64,000 bases of DNA from Macrostomum lignano (taxonomy: Eukaryota). Numbering within the stretch: the first letter of the stretch is position 1; every line of letters begins with the position of its first letter. The notes under the pieces are model-generated. The model saw only the letters and a list, made by a program, of their open reading frames with translations, was not told the DNA's origin and made no database searches. The stretch spans positions 50,877 to 114,876 of the forward strand of contig NIVC01002762.1 in the NCBI GenBank assembly GCA_002269645.1, in the 5' to 3' direction. Shown here piece after piece: positions 56,420-59,400 of the stretch. The position numbers and the translations under genes were made by a program.

Positions 56420-59400
56420 TTAGTCTGAGTCTGAGTCGACCACGCGGTTCCGTTCGGCCTGCAGCCACTCGGAGTTCTCAAATAGTCGGGCGAAAATACG
56501 ATTATTCGTGGCGCTGTCCTTGCCGAAGTACTGCACCTGAATCTTCTGTCTGACCCTCAGCTGCAGGCTCTTGGCGGTTTTGATCTGAAATAAACAAATA
56601 GAGATTAAGTCAACGGAGTAACTAACTGATTAACAAAATAATTAACTAACTATCTAACTAACTAACTAACTAACTAACTAACTAACTAACTAACTAACTA
56701 ACTAAACTAACTAACTAACTAACTAACTAACTAACTACTAACTAACTAACTAACTAACTAACTAACTAACTAACTAACTAACTAACTAACTAACTAACTA
56801 ACTAAACTAACTACTAACTAACTAACTAACTAACTACTAACTAACTAACTAACTAACTAACTAACTAACTAACTAACTAACTAACTAACTACTAACTAAC
56901 TAACTAACTAACTAACTAACTAACTAACTAACTAACTAACTAACTAACTAACTAACTAACTAACTAACTAACTAACTAACTAACTAACTAACTAACTAAC
57001 CAACTGACTAAATCACTCACTTTAGTTGGGTCCGAGTGCAGACTATTGTTGGCGATGAAGAAGACTTCCTGACGGCCTTCAATTTTGACCCAGACGCCCT
57101 CCTTGGTGATCTTGATGATCTCGGCCTCGTAAGTTTTGCCATATTCCAGCTTGTTCCTGCTGCGCCGCCTGGCAAGCCACAGGACGACTTTCCTGTACAC
57201 CCAGTGCAGGATGATGTACAGGAAGCCAAGGACGGACCCGATACCGACGGCGGCAAATAAGCCGGCAAAGTAGCTGAAGCTGAGCGGGATTTTGTCAGCC
57301 GGATTGATCACTGATGTCGGGCACCGGTTCAGGCCGAAGTACTTCTTCTCAAGATTCTGATACTCGGAATAGCGAACAGAGTTAAGAAACGACCTTACTT
57401 CGTTAGTGAACGGGTAGTTCTTGCGAATCATGGTGGTCTCGTACACCACCTCTTCAAGCGGCCCGTATGTCTTCAGTACGCAGTCTTTGGTCTTCTGATA
57501 GTTAATTGTTGTAGCAGAATCGATGTAAACATAGCGATCGTTGGATTTGAGTGTTTCGACAGCGGCTGCGGCTGACGGCTGTAGCATGTCTTCTGGCCAA
57601 TTCGCTTTGGCTGTCTGCACCAGATTCGGCCAGCGTCTCTGCACGGTTGTGTAGGCGATTGAGTTGTTCCAAAATATGGCTCGATAAGATGTGGCATTTT
57701 GCAACTCGGTGATGGTTGTGAACGGAACCGACTCGTCCGGCTTAACTAAAAACGGCACCAAGTTGCTCACGTAGGTGGTCATGTAGAATAGCGTGGAAAA
57801 CCACAACAGCAGGGTGAATAAACGAGCTGACGGCTTGCGGGGCTCTGTCTCCACCTTGGACATCAGGAAGGAGCTCAGTACAAGGAAGAATGATGCCATG
57901 AAGCTGAACATTGGCTTGTCGCTTTTATTAGGACTGATCTTGTCGCTGACAAACAGCGTGACAGACAGTACAACCATGGAGAACATGATGCTGATCCATA
58001 CGTACCAGGAGAACGGATAGAATACATTGAAGAAGTCCAATGGATGAATCGTCCTCTTGAGTAGCATTAGCAGGCCAGACTGCACCAGATTGATTGACAT
58101 ATCCGCCGCCTGAAGTCGGTCCGACAGAGCAAACATGAAATTTGCCGACATGTCTGCCCTCTGAAATTTTACAAAGAGCGATACAATATGATTGAGAAAT
58201 TCTAGCGATCGAGGGGTCTTTATCCAAAATATTCAAACTTTAAACTGCATGAGTACGAGCAGGCTTAATCGAACTGATGGGGCACTTACATTCTCGGTGA
58301 GGTATCCCATAATTCCAGTCCAGCTTCCGTCTGGTTTTTCGAACCGTAGCTCCCATCTTCGGCAAGCAAAATCTCGAATTGAAAGCCGAGATTCCTCTGC
58401 ATCAGCAGGATGAGATCGTAACTGATGCCGGTGAGTTCTCCGTTCAAGTTTTTGTATAGATAAGGCTGGTCCTAAAAGCAAATATATAAATTCATTGTTG
58501 TACTTCTGCTCTAAGGGGCGTTCGTTTTCTAGCTATGTAGCTAGTGCCTATGAGCTATTGAAAGGCCACTTCCAATACACCAAACTGATTATTCAACTCT
58601 TCCAAGGCGCTTGGGATTCACAAAGGTGTTCCACTCAGCGTCCTTAGCGACGCCTTCGACTGTTGTCCCCGACCGTCACCAAGGACGCAGGCTGGTTGCC
58701 ATAGCGACAACTATACGCCTGATGTTGAGCCAGCATAAAAGCGCCGTGCTCTGTGTACCAGACAACATCGAAGTTAGTACTCGACTGTCTTCTGGCTGAC
58801 GAAATCATCATAGACACGGCCTTTGGATTGCCAAAATATTGCTTGGGCATATTTTTTGCATACTTTTGCATACTTAGTAAAACAGCTTTTTACTTTCGGT
58901 TCAGTAGCAAGGAAGAATACGTAAGCTTTATATATATTTTTTATAAAAATAAAGGCAGCTGAAATAGCTTTGATAAGTTTAGAAGCCCAAGCTTGCAGGC
59001 GTAAACAACTTGCTAATTGGTTCAGCAGTAATGTACATTAGCCAGTCCGCTGAAATGTACATGGCAGCTTTCGGCTGGAATTCCGAGAAAGGCAATAAAA
59101 ATCGGGACGGGTTGGGGGGATAGGGTGGAAAGGCGCAGTTGGGGGGTTTAAGCTGGGGGCGGGGGTAGCGCAAGCAACCGCGGTACTAAAGGGACCAAAA
59201 TCCTATATACTAAAAATTTGTAAACTAGAAAAGAATTCTACTGTTTGTTCTATCGGGCTAAATGTCCTTTTAAGCTTACCAGAACACCAACAAATCGAAT
59301 CAGAGAATTTTTAATCGTTGTGGTCTTAAAATAATCCACTTTGTAGGCGGGCGTAGCGTTCTGTATCCACGTGCCGGTCTTGGACAGGAAGTCGCTGTCT

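Follow-up and report, generated by a model that had tools for sequence, protein, structure and literature searches.

How did a ligand-gated channel acquire, as its cytoplasmic tail, a domain resembling that of a mitochondrial RNA-degrading enzyme, and what might it do with such a tail? The question is raised by a gene of the flatworm Macrostomum lignano, contained in a stretch of 64,000 nucleotides (nt) of assembly GCA_002269645.1 (contig NIVC01002762.1, positions 50,877 to 114,876 of the forward strand); this stretch is called the window here, and coordinates refer to its first letter unless another locus is named. The gene occupies 56420-63352 on the minus strand and comprises about 10 exons from signal-peptide exon to stop codon, the exon limits upstream of 58471 being approximate. 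Its product runs in the order signal peptide, ligand-binding domain, pore, last membrane segment (M4), short basic tether and S1 barrel, the barrel making up essentially the whole tail. A preliminary description of the sequence had proposed an ionotropic glutamate receptor (iGluR)-type channel ending in an S1 domain like that of polynucleotide phosphorylase (PNPase; the mitochondrial enzyme is PNPT1), and this proposal is borne out by a match to the Pfam family Lig_chan (E 1.6e-20), by a match of the tail to PNPT1, by the predicted fold and by the recovery of 12 proteins of this kind. Taken together, sequence comparison and modelling make it very likely that this is a real iGluR-family gene whose whole tail is a PNPT1-type S1 barrel, acquired by exon shuffling in a rhabditophoran ancestor.

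A PNPT1-type S1 barrel as the tail

The junction between channel and barrel can be read directly from the DNA. The channel exon (57021-58160, minus strand; 1140 nt, open throughout, acceptor at 58160) encodes the rest of the ligand-binding S1 lobe, M1, the M2 pore loop, M3, the S2 lobe, M4 and the basic linker, and it ends 43 residues into the S1 barrel. Past M4 the open frame continues into LEYGKTYEAEII...DPTK, and the 3' end of the exon reads ...RRRSRNKLEYGKTYEAEIIKITKEGVWVKIEGRQEVFFIANNSLHSDPTK (in a longer reading, ...HWVYRKVVLWLARRRSRNK-LEYGKTYEAEIIKITKEGVWVKIEGRQEVFFIANNSLHSDPTK). The juxtamembrane linker RKVVLWLARRRSRNK (57150-57194) has 15 residues, 7 of them Lys or Arg, and is followed by the first part of the barrel (57021-57149; LEYGKTY...LHSDPTK, strands beta1-beta3). 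The tail intron (56585-57020, 436 nt) is a phase-0 GT-AG intron that starts with GTGAGT at 57020 and ends in TTTATTTCAG, more fully TTTGTTTATTTCAG, at 56585; a (GTTA)n microsatellite (56640-57000) makes up almost all of it. The last exon (56584-56423, phase 0) reads IKTAKSLQLRVRQKIQVQYFGKDSATNNRIFARLFENSEWLQAERNRVVDSDSD (IKTAKSLQ...DSDSD) and is closed by a TAA stop at 56422-56420. It encodes the second part of the barrel (56480-56584; IKTAKSLQLRVRQKIQVQYFGKDSATNNRIFARLF, strands beta4-beta5) and a predicted C-terminal helix with an acidic end (ENSEWLQAERNRVVDSDSD; 56420-56479 with the stop codon). This helix (tail residues 88-100) is modelled by AlphaFold with a predicted local distance difference test score (pLDDT) of 60-75, and the helix and acidic segment are not conserved across the family described below. 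The open exon running past M4, the 57021/56584 junction and the division of the domain between two exons, all part of the preliminary description, were confirmed on the minus-strand sequence.

The identity of the tail rests on searches of three kinds. With the 104-residue tail as query, phmmer against all PDB sequences returned the S1 domain of human PNPT1 as its sole match (E 2.5e-7), and a profile made up solely of flatworm iGluR tails (alignment A2) matched the same domain with an E-value of 3.9e-16, so that the PNPT1 similarity put forward in the preliminary description is upheld. The next S1 domains found by the tails-only profile, those of Rrp5 (2.7e-4), bS1 (8e-3) and bacterial PNPase (1e-2), lie so far behind PNPT1 that the tail is to be regarded as specifically PNPT1-like and not generically S1-like. 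Tail and PNPT1 S1 (PDB 9kjt, 9kjr, 9njb) are 36% identical over about 76 residues, almost without gaps, and have in common the motifs L-E-F/Y-G-x-x-Y-x-A, G-V-x-V, N-x-x-L and V-x-Y-F-G-x-D. The structural prediction agrees: an AlphaFold model of the tail, made from an alignment that included four true PNPase S1 sequences, reached a pLDDT of 84.9 and shows a five-stranded barrel (tail residues 13-21, 25-30, 36-40, 64-72 and 79-83) followed by the C-terminal helix, and it supersedes a poor single-sequence model (pLDDT 63). The best 30 Foldseek matches to this model in the PDB were all S1 domains, among them bS1, eIF2-alpha, human PNPase (36% identity, root mean square deviation 2.9), Tex, RNase R/II and Rpb7.

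A profile search with the Pfam S1 model (PF00575) had been suggested as a check, and here the answer was divided: the window tail scored 19.4 bits and a paralogue (P0003) 20.2, below the gathering threshold of 22, with no match for the remaining members, whereas the sequence search of the PDB does find the PNPT1 S1 domain. The sub-threshold Pfam score is not counted against the fold, because the PDB sequence, profile and structure searches agree, and it probably explains why this architecture went unflagged. The tail is thus, by homology and by model, a five-stranded beta-barrel of the PNPT1 S1 type, an oligonucleotide/oligosaccharide-binding (OB) fold.

The remainder of PNPase is missing. Pfam finds neither RNase PH nor KH domains in the window protein or in the family members, and the protein is therefore not a PNPase; tblastn with PNPases matched the window at a single place, 56587-56486. 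We rejected the possibility that the tail belongs to the 3' end of an adjacent PNPase gene: RNase PH and KH sequences are missing from the window, and the gene that follows downstream is a member of the xanthine dehydrogenase/aldehyde oxidase (XDH/AOX) family. The tail also differs from PNPT1 S1 in its setting, being joined to a membrane helix and not to a KH domain, outside any mitochondrial context, and in its predicted copy number, which would be four per tetramer as against three per PNPT1 trimer.

The channel core

Is the rest of the protein a genuine glutamate receptor relative? The channel exon matches Lig_chan (PF00060) with 73.8 bits against a cut-off of 30.8, and the channel core aligns with PDB sequences of GluK5 (5.6e-28), GluN1 and GluA2 (E 1e-28 to 1e-22) from the ligand-binding lobe through M4. 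The Lig_chan, GluK5, GluN1 and GluA2 alignments together place all four membrane segments: M1 (57948-58013; hydropathy and GluK5 alignment), the re-entrant M2 pore loop (57861-57908; GluK5 alignment), a divergent loop that lacks a QQG-type selectivity motif, M3 (57744-57821) and M4 (57195-57284), which coincides with a hydropathy maximum of 2.24 and aligns with the M4 of GluK5. The ligand-binding domain matches SBP_bac_3 with 36.4 bits; part of its S1 lobe (DQPYLYKNLNGELTG...GIMGYLTEN) lies in a 182-nt exon of its own (58290-58471, minus strand) that the UniProt model A0A1I8HFD1 skips. The Arg that binds the ligand's alpha-carboxylate is kept, the Arg in ...ALSDRLQAADMS aligning with that of GluK5 TITAEREKVIDFS. 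The SYTANLAAF gate motif was not found in M3 of the window protein, which has YMTTYVSNLVPF at this place, and the other family members diverge still further. Divergent receptors of the ionotropic receptor (IR) type likewise do without SYTANLAAF, and the loss of the motif is evidence against a classical AMPA, kainate or NMDA subtype, not against membership of the superfamily. On its domain content the window protein is a true member of the iGluR superfamily.

The comparison with GluK5, GluN1 and GluA2 extends to the ligand-binding lobes (PF10613/SBP_bac_3), M1, the pore loop, M3, M4, the carboxylate-binding Arg and a C-terminus after M4 that is cytoplasmic in these receptors and, by topology, predicted to be so in the window protein. 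The differences are a folded OB barrel as the tail, strongly diverged M3 gate and pore-loop motifs, and the lack of any amino-terminal domain detected by Pfam.

A family of S1-tailed channels in flatworms

A search for further iGluR proteins with an S1 domain in related species had been proposed, and it succeeded. An exhaustive phmmer scan of the tail against 1.84 billion representative proteins gave 19 matches, of which 12 are iGluR-type proteins or C-terminal fragments of them, 4 are true PNPases (one from a nematode, one from a spider) and 3 are low-complexity repeats. The top match is UniProt A0A1I8HFD1 (783 residues, M. lignano, here P0001), the protein of the window gene itself: the window is identical to it at every residue that could be placed, including 100% of the tail. 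In P0001 and the 11 other iGluR-type matches alike, the tail comes directly after M4. The 12 proteins span Macrostomorpha, Cestoda and Monogenea, the named sources being M. lignano (two genes), Schistocephalus solidus, Spirometra, Rodentolepis nana, Hymenolepis microstoma and the monogenean Cichlidogyrus casuarinus; five further members are sequences from Logan, ENA or MetaClust. Lig_chan was recognised in all seven long members scanned except the 420-residue Cichlidogyrus model. The linker between M4 and S1 is 11-18 residues long, mostly 14-15, and basic in all 12. One Logan contig of 2849 nt holds a single uninterrupted open reading frame of 857 residues that crosses all three intron positions of the other flatworm genes, and for this reason it looks like a spliced mRNA. 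A word-index homologue search, in an index that is patchy for these proteins, gave no match to a 431-residue channel-plus-tail query, and to the tail alignment only short PNPase fragments, with none of the established family members among them.

Macrostomorpha and Neodermata are separate groups inside Rhabditophora, and the occurrence of the fusion in both argues that it is old and has been retained. In a neighbour-joining tree of 25 S1 domains (11 tails and 14 PNPases) the tails separated from the PNPases in 295 of 300 bootstraps, and a 2-residue loop insertion is present in every one of the 11 aligned tails and in 1 of the 14 PNPases, that of a nematode. Both observations fit a single capture. 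The single paralogue available is about 35% identical, with synonymous sites saturated; conservation of the tail across the phylum is taken as evidence that it is under constraint.

Database names reflect the hybrid character of these proteins. The H. microstoma member is called "glutamate receptor ionotropic kainate 1", while two S. solidus proteins (P0006 and P0023; A0A0X3NVQ4 and A0A0X3PEC1, of 949 and 950 residues) are named "Polyribonucleotide nucleotidyltransferase 1" in UniProt. The latter name is, to judge from the presence of Lig_chan and the lack of RNase PH and KH domains, a misannotation driven by the S1 tail. Gene models in the family show further peculiarities. In Spirometra sp. 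Aus1 (L003, about 53631-53681), isoform P0028 has 17 extra residues, KRTGLMSQRQPLLGDLR, from a cassette exon placed exactly where the third S1 intron lies; the cassette falls in the beta3-beta4 loop and may represent alternative splicing that alters the barrel. In R. nana (L004, 6869-8073 and 19661-21571), two tandem iGluR-S1 genes are joined in the 1263-residue model P0013, and in M. lignano the model P0020 (L002, from 9152 onward) fuses an iGluR-S1 paralogue to a downstream G-protein-coupled receptor (GPCR). P0013 and P0020 are probably annotation merges.

Capture of three exons from PNPT1

Where the barrel came from is recorded in its introns. In the tails of the two cestodes with intron data, three introns are present, in R. 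nana at KLSK/EQWALVPG (phase 0), VSM(AA/G)RNGIY (phase 2) and SSPLK/VYNA (phase 0) and in Spirometra at RAQ/NKLEFG (phase 0), VEV(GA/A)DNGVW (phase 2) and SKTN/RQGKK (phase 0), a slash marking the intron; of the two phase-0 sites one precedes xxxxLEFG and the other falls at K/, and the phase-2 site is three codons ahead of the invariant Gly. The PNPT1 gene of the spider Caerostris darwini has all three, at TEE/EAPKLEYG (0), VEI(AG/G)DNG (2) and HKK/IQHPS (0), and so has PNPT1 at a eukaryote locus (L007); that of the rotifer Brachionus calyciflorus has two, at EES/KEPQLEFG (0) and GRK/IVHGS (0), and PNPT1 at a compact-genome locus (L005) has the last one. The M. lignano paralogue retains the first and third tail introns and the window gene the third only. 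The third intron thus has the same position and phase in the window gene, the paralogue, R. nana, Spirometra and four PNPT1 genes. Likely GC-AG introns with the donor AG/GCAAGT were noted in two of these loci, at about 6418 of L007 (the PNPase gene) and, as an alternative donor, at about 5106 of L002 (the M. lignano paralogue).

Whether the intron at K/IK coincides with one in PNPT1 had been put forward as a means of telling DNA-level capture from retrocopying. It does coincide, in spider, rotifer, L005 and L007, and with the match of two further cestode introns this argues for exon capture at the DNA level and not for a retrocopy; a retrocopy origin was rejected on the ground that the PNPT1 introns are retained. 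Homology between tail and PNPase begins 2-5 residues into the exon after the first intron. The agreement of all three positions and phases (0, 2, 0) with PNPT1, on the same five-stranded barrel, indicates that exon shuffling brought in the S1 exons before the split of Macrostomorpha and Neodermata. On this reconstruction, the three terminal, S1-coding exons of PNPT1 would have moved downstream of the iGluR M4 exon in an early rhabditophoran and been spliced onto it, and some lineages would later have lost introns, the window gene having lost the first two captured introns and kept the third (57020-56585). The first part of the barrel in the window gene is the counterpart of PNPT1 S1 exons 1 and 2, and loss of both introns there accounts for half of the barrel lying inside the channel exon.

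What the barrel may do, and the state of this copy

What distinguishes the captured domain from its source is its surface. The core residues (G, Y, the alternating hydrophobics and YFG.D) are kept in the tails, whereas residues invariant on the surface of PNPT1 are not (E20, H53, K68, R80, S82, R83 and K84 in tail numbering, the last four forming R80-x-S-R-K). The tails have instead acquired aromatics at W27 and at residue 37 (Phe or Tyr in 9 of 11), on strands beta2 and beta3, and F81 in place of an aliphatic residue; each tail has 6-12 aromatic residues (10 of 11 have 9-12) compared with 5-8 in PNPase S1 domains, and the tails are on average more basic, with a median net charge of +4. The RNA-contact positions of E. 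coli PNPase S1 we take to be F19, F22, H34, D64 and R68 (after Bycroft et al. 1997). In the window tail these correspond to E, W, A, D and N, respectively; across the tails the Phe22 equivalent is W, F or Y in 8 of 11 and Asp64 is kept in 8 of 11, the remaining positions vary, and PNPT1 itself consistently keeps only H34 and D64. This looks like the mark of a fold that selection has preserved while the binding surface was reshaped.

The role that these features suggest most readily, and which we put forward tentatively, is that of a membrane-proximal module binding polyanions or single-stranded RNA. iGluRs are tetramers with an intracellular C-terminus, and each receptor would accordingly hold four cytoplasmic S1 barrels, 11-18 basic residues below M4, by the inner mouth of the pore. 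The barrel would bind a polyanion, with single-stranded RNA as ligand, through the canonical OB face with its gained W27, F/Y37 and positive charge, and binding would either anchor RNA or ribonucleoprotein at the receptor or make assembly or gating responsive to a cytoplasmic polyanion. As a whole, the explanation that combines the architecture, its origin and this role is the one we favour, with a confidence that falls just short of an even balance. The stronger proposition, that there is a rhabditophoran iGluR subfamily physically coupled to RNA through an S1 barrel directly under the pore, must be called doubtful.

Several points weigh against this account. RNA binding is something we purely infer, and the PNPT1 mode of RNA contact is probably not preserved, given that the PNPT1-invariant residues and the His34 and Arg68 equivalents are not kept. 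Two cestode tails are not basic (Spirometra -3, R. nana 0), and near the membrane an aromatic and basic surface would serve equally well for contacts with lipid or protein. At tail residue 62, in the turn before beta4 (56557-56559, RVRQKIQ), the window protein has Arg where Gly is usual (9 of 11 tails, 13 of 14 PNPase S1 domains). The family has no trematode or planarian member among the matches from the 1.84 billion representatives, and the 5' exons of the window gene are frame-broken as assembled, with at least seven small indels.

Much the same observations can be read as exaptation of the barrel for protein or lipid binding, with nucleic-acid binding given up and architecture and origin unchanged. 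The barrel would then have its docking site in the cytoplasmic loops of the channel itself, in a partner subunit, a scaffold protein or the anionic inner leaflet, and would act as a cytoplasmic cap or as an assembly, endoplasmic-reticulum-export or anchoring domain. Replacement of most PNPT1-invariant polar and basic surface residues speaks for this possibility, as do the non-basic cestode tails and the combination of gained Trp, Phe and Tyr with Lys and Arg, which is typical of interfacial membrane binding; the very short tether of conserved length (11-18 residues) suggests rigid packing on the transmembrane domain or membrane and not a free RNA-catching arm. Among structural neighbours, the S1 domain of eIF2-alpha is a protein-docking surface, and the human PNPase S1 domain is also in protein contact, with the helicase Suv3 (PMC11851098). 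Against it stand the gain of an aromatic exactly at the classical stacking position on beta2, the origin of all structural neighbours in RNA-handling proteins and the fact that no partner for the barrel is known. To our knowledge, nearly all characterised S1 domains contact RNA. A protein or lipid role is nearly as likely as the polyanion or RNA role, and we hold it as a possible alternative, itself well short of probable.

Two other doubts concern the locus and not the function. That the fusion is an artefact of chimeric assembly, of a gene model merged with a separate S1 or PNPase gene, or of chance similarity is extremely improbable: merged models do occur in these genomes, as P0020 and P0013 illustrate, but here M4 and the first 43 S1 residues share one uninterrupted exon, the junction recurs 11-18 residues after M4 in independent assemblies of six named species and in a transcript-like contig, the E-values are far beyond chance and no other part of a PNPase lies in the window. 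The integrity of the window copy is a more serious matter. Frame-aware mapping of P0001 together with inspection of the DNA located six small indels in three 5' exons (60335-61907, minus strand): +1 near 61838, -1 near 61779, -1 near 61310, +2 near 61272, -1 near 61241 and -1 near 60378. A seventh makes the exon 58471-58290 one base short at the A5 run 58335-58339; as assembled, the PF10613 match to this exon is split between two successive frames (profile positions 7-64 and 63-112), and with one base added the match is contiguous from 6 to 113 (59.9 bits). The last two exons have none. The locus could accordingly be a dead or dying duplicate, broken in its 5' half and yielding no full-length receptor, within a family that is itself real, and this would be compatible with either functional reading of the family. 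Several of the at least seven frame-breaking indels give stop codons if read straight through, they cluster in the 5' 1.2 kb and spare the 3' 1.3 kb, several do not involve a homopolymer, and the Arg at the conserved Gly position is in keeping with decay. As an internal control for the assembly's indel rate, two AOX paralogue blocks in the window that are 99.5% identical differ by 1 indel in 1448 nt, so that the assembly is not riddled with indels everywhere, although the control gives a weak answer. Decay should, however, produce several substitutions per indel, and there is no substitution in any placed residue of the 783-residue P0001; differences confined to indels are what consensus errors of long reads typically produce, the change at three sites is one of homopolymer length, and two groups of 5' indels each sum to zero (+1/-1 and -1/+2/-1), the frame being restored after each. 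The lack of any other differences suggests consensus errors, while the clustering and the low indel count in the AOX blocks leave a young pseudogene copy possible; on balance we consider a dying duplicate unlikely. The indels have no effect on the conclusion at the level of the family.

Relation to known channels

The C-terminal domains of known iGluRs are for the most part unstructured and bear PDZ ligands and phosphorylation sites. The preliminary description had known of no iGluR or IR with an S1 tail, and none came to light here: full-text searches found no paper on an iGluR or IR whose tail is an S1 or OB fold, and a survey of S1-domain proteins mentions neither receptors nor channels. 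The insect and protostome IRs are, like the window protein, divergent relatives of iGluRs whose pore and ligand motifs have degenerated and which are possibly chemosensory; their tails are short, however, and for a flatworm the insect "IR" framing is not applicable. We know of no IR reported with a folded cytoplasmic domain.

A parallel, by analogy and not by homology, is offered by the NUDT9-homology domain of TRPM2, another cation channel with a C-terminal domain derived from a mitochondrial nucleotide- or RNA-metabolising enzyme. TRPM2 uses this domain as a cytoplasmic ligand sensor, and in both cases the captured domain has retained its fold and found a new use beside the pore. The two cases differ in channel superfamily and in the domain captured, and gating by ADP-ribose is demonstrated for TRPM2 whereas the role of the S1 tail is predicted.

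As judged by comparative sequence analysis, the S1-tailed channels are a conserved, undescribed domain architecture with a traceable origin in exon shuffling. The prevailing view of iGluR tails is that of disordered regulatory regions, and the known repertoire does not include a folded domain of a nucleic-acid-binding type at M4; this one has been kept since before the split of free-living macrostomids and parasitic Neodermata. As a case of exon shuffling it is unusually clean, with three exons of a mitochondrial RNA-degrading enzyme placed on a channel gene and their intron phases still readable. If coupling to RNA were true, a single polypeptide would join receptor activity to local RNA handling, whether by tethering of mRNA or ribonucleoproteins, by local translation or through control of gating or assembly by cytoplasmic RNA or some other polyanion, and an intrinsic RNA-binding domain would be a first for a channel of the neurotransmitter-receptor type. 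A barrel that binds RNA or polyanions would also provide a direct handle on receptor-RNA coupling, a question that is testable in M. lignano, which is transgenic-capable and open to RNA interference. The presence of the fusion in tapeworms and a monogenean, with no such domain in vertebrate iGluRs, marks it as a parasite-lineage-specific feature of a druggable channel class.

Genomic neighbourhood

The introns and intergenic DNA of the window are rich in micro- and minisatellites (62148-63238, 59600-59880 and many other sites), and tandem-repeat arrays also make up the first intron of the iGluR-S1 gene and an upstream intron. On the minus strand at 29800-55000, three XDH/AOX-family genes form a tandem array with the Pfam domains Fer2, Fer2_2, FAD_binding_5, Ald_Xan_dh_C and MoCoBD_1/2. 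The near-identical 1448-nt blocks mentioned above are the 5' ends of copies B and C, and they suggest recent duplication or gene conversion. Just past the low-coordinate end of this array is an open reading frame with an EF-hand pair (29796-30077, minus strand), and near the start of the window are exons of a WD40 beta-propeller (56-559 and 8748-9458, both on the minus strand).

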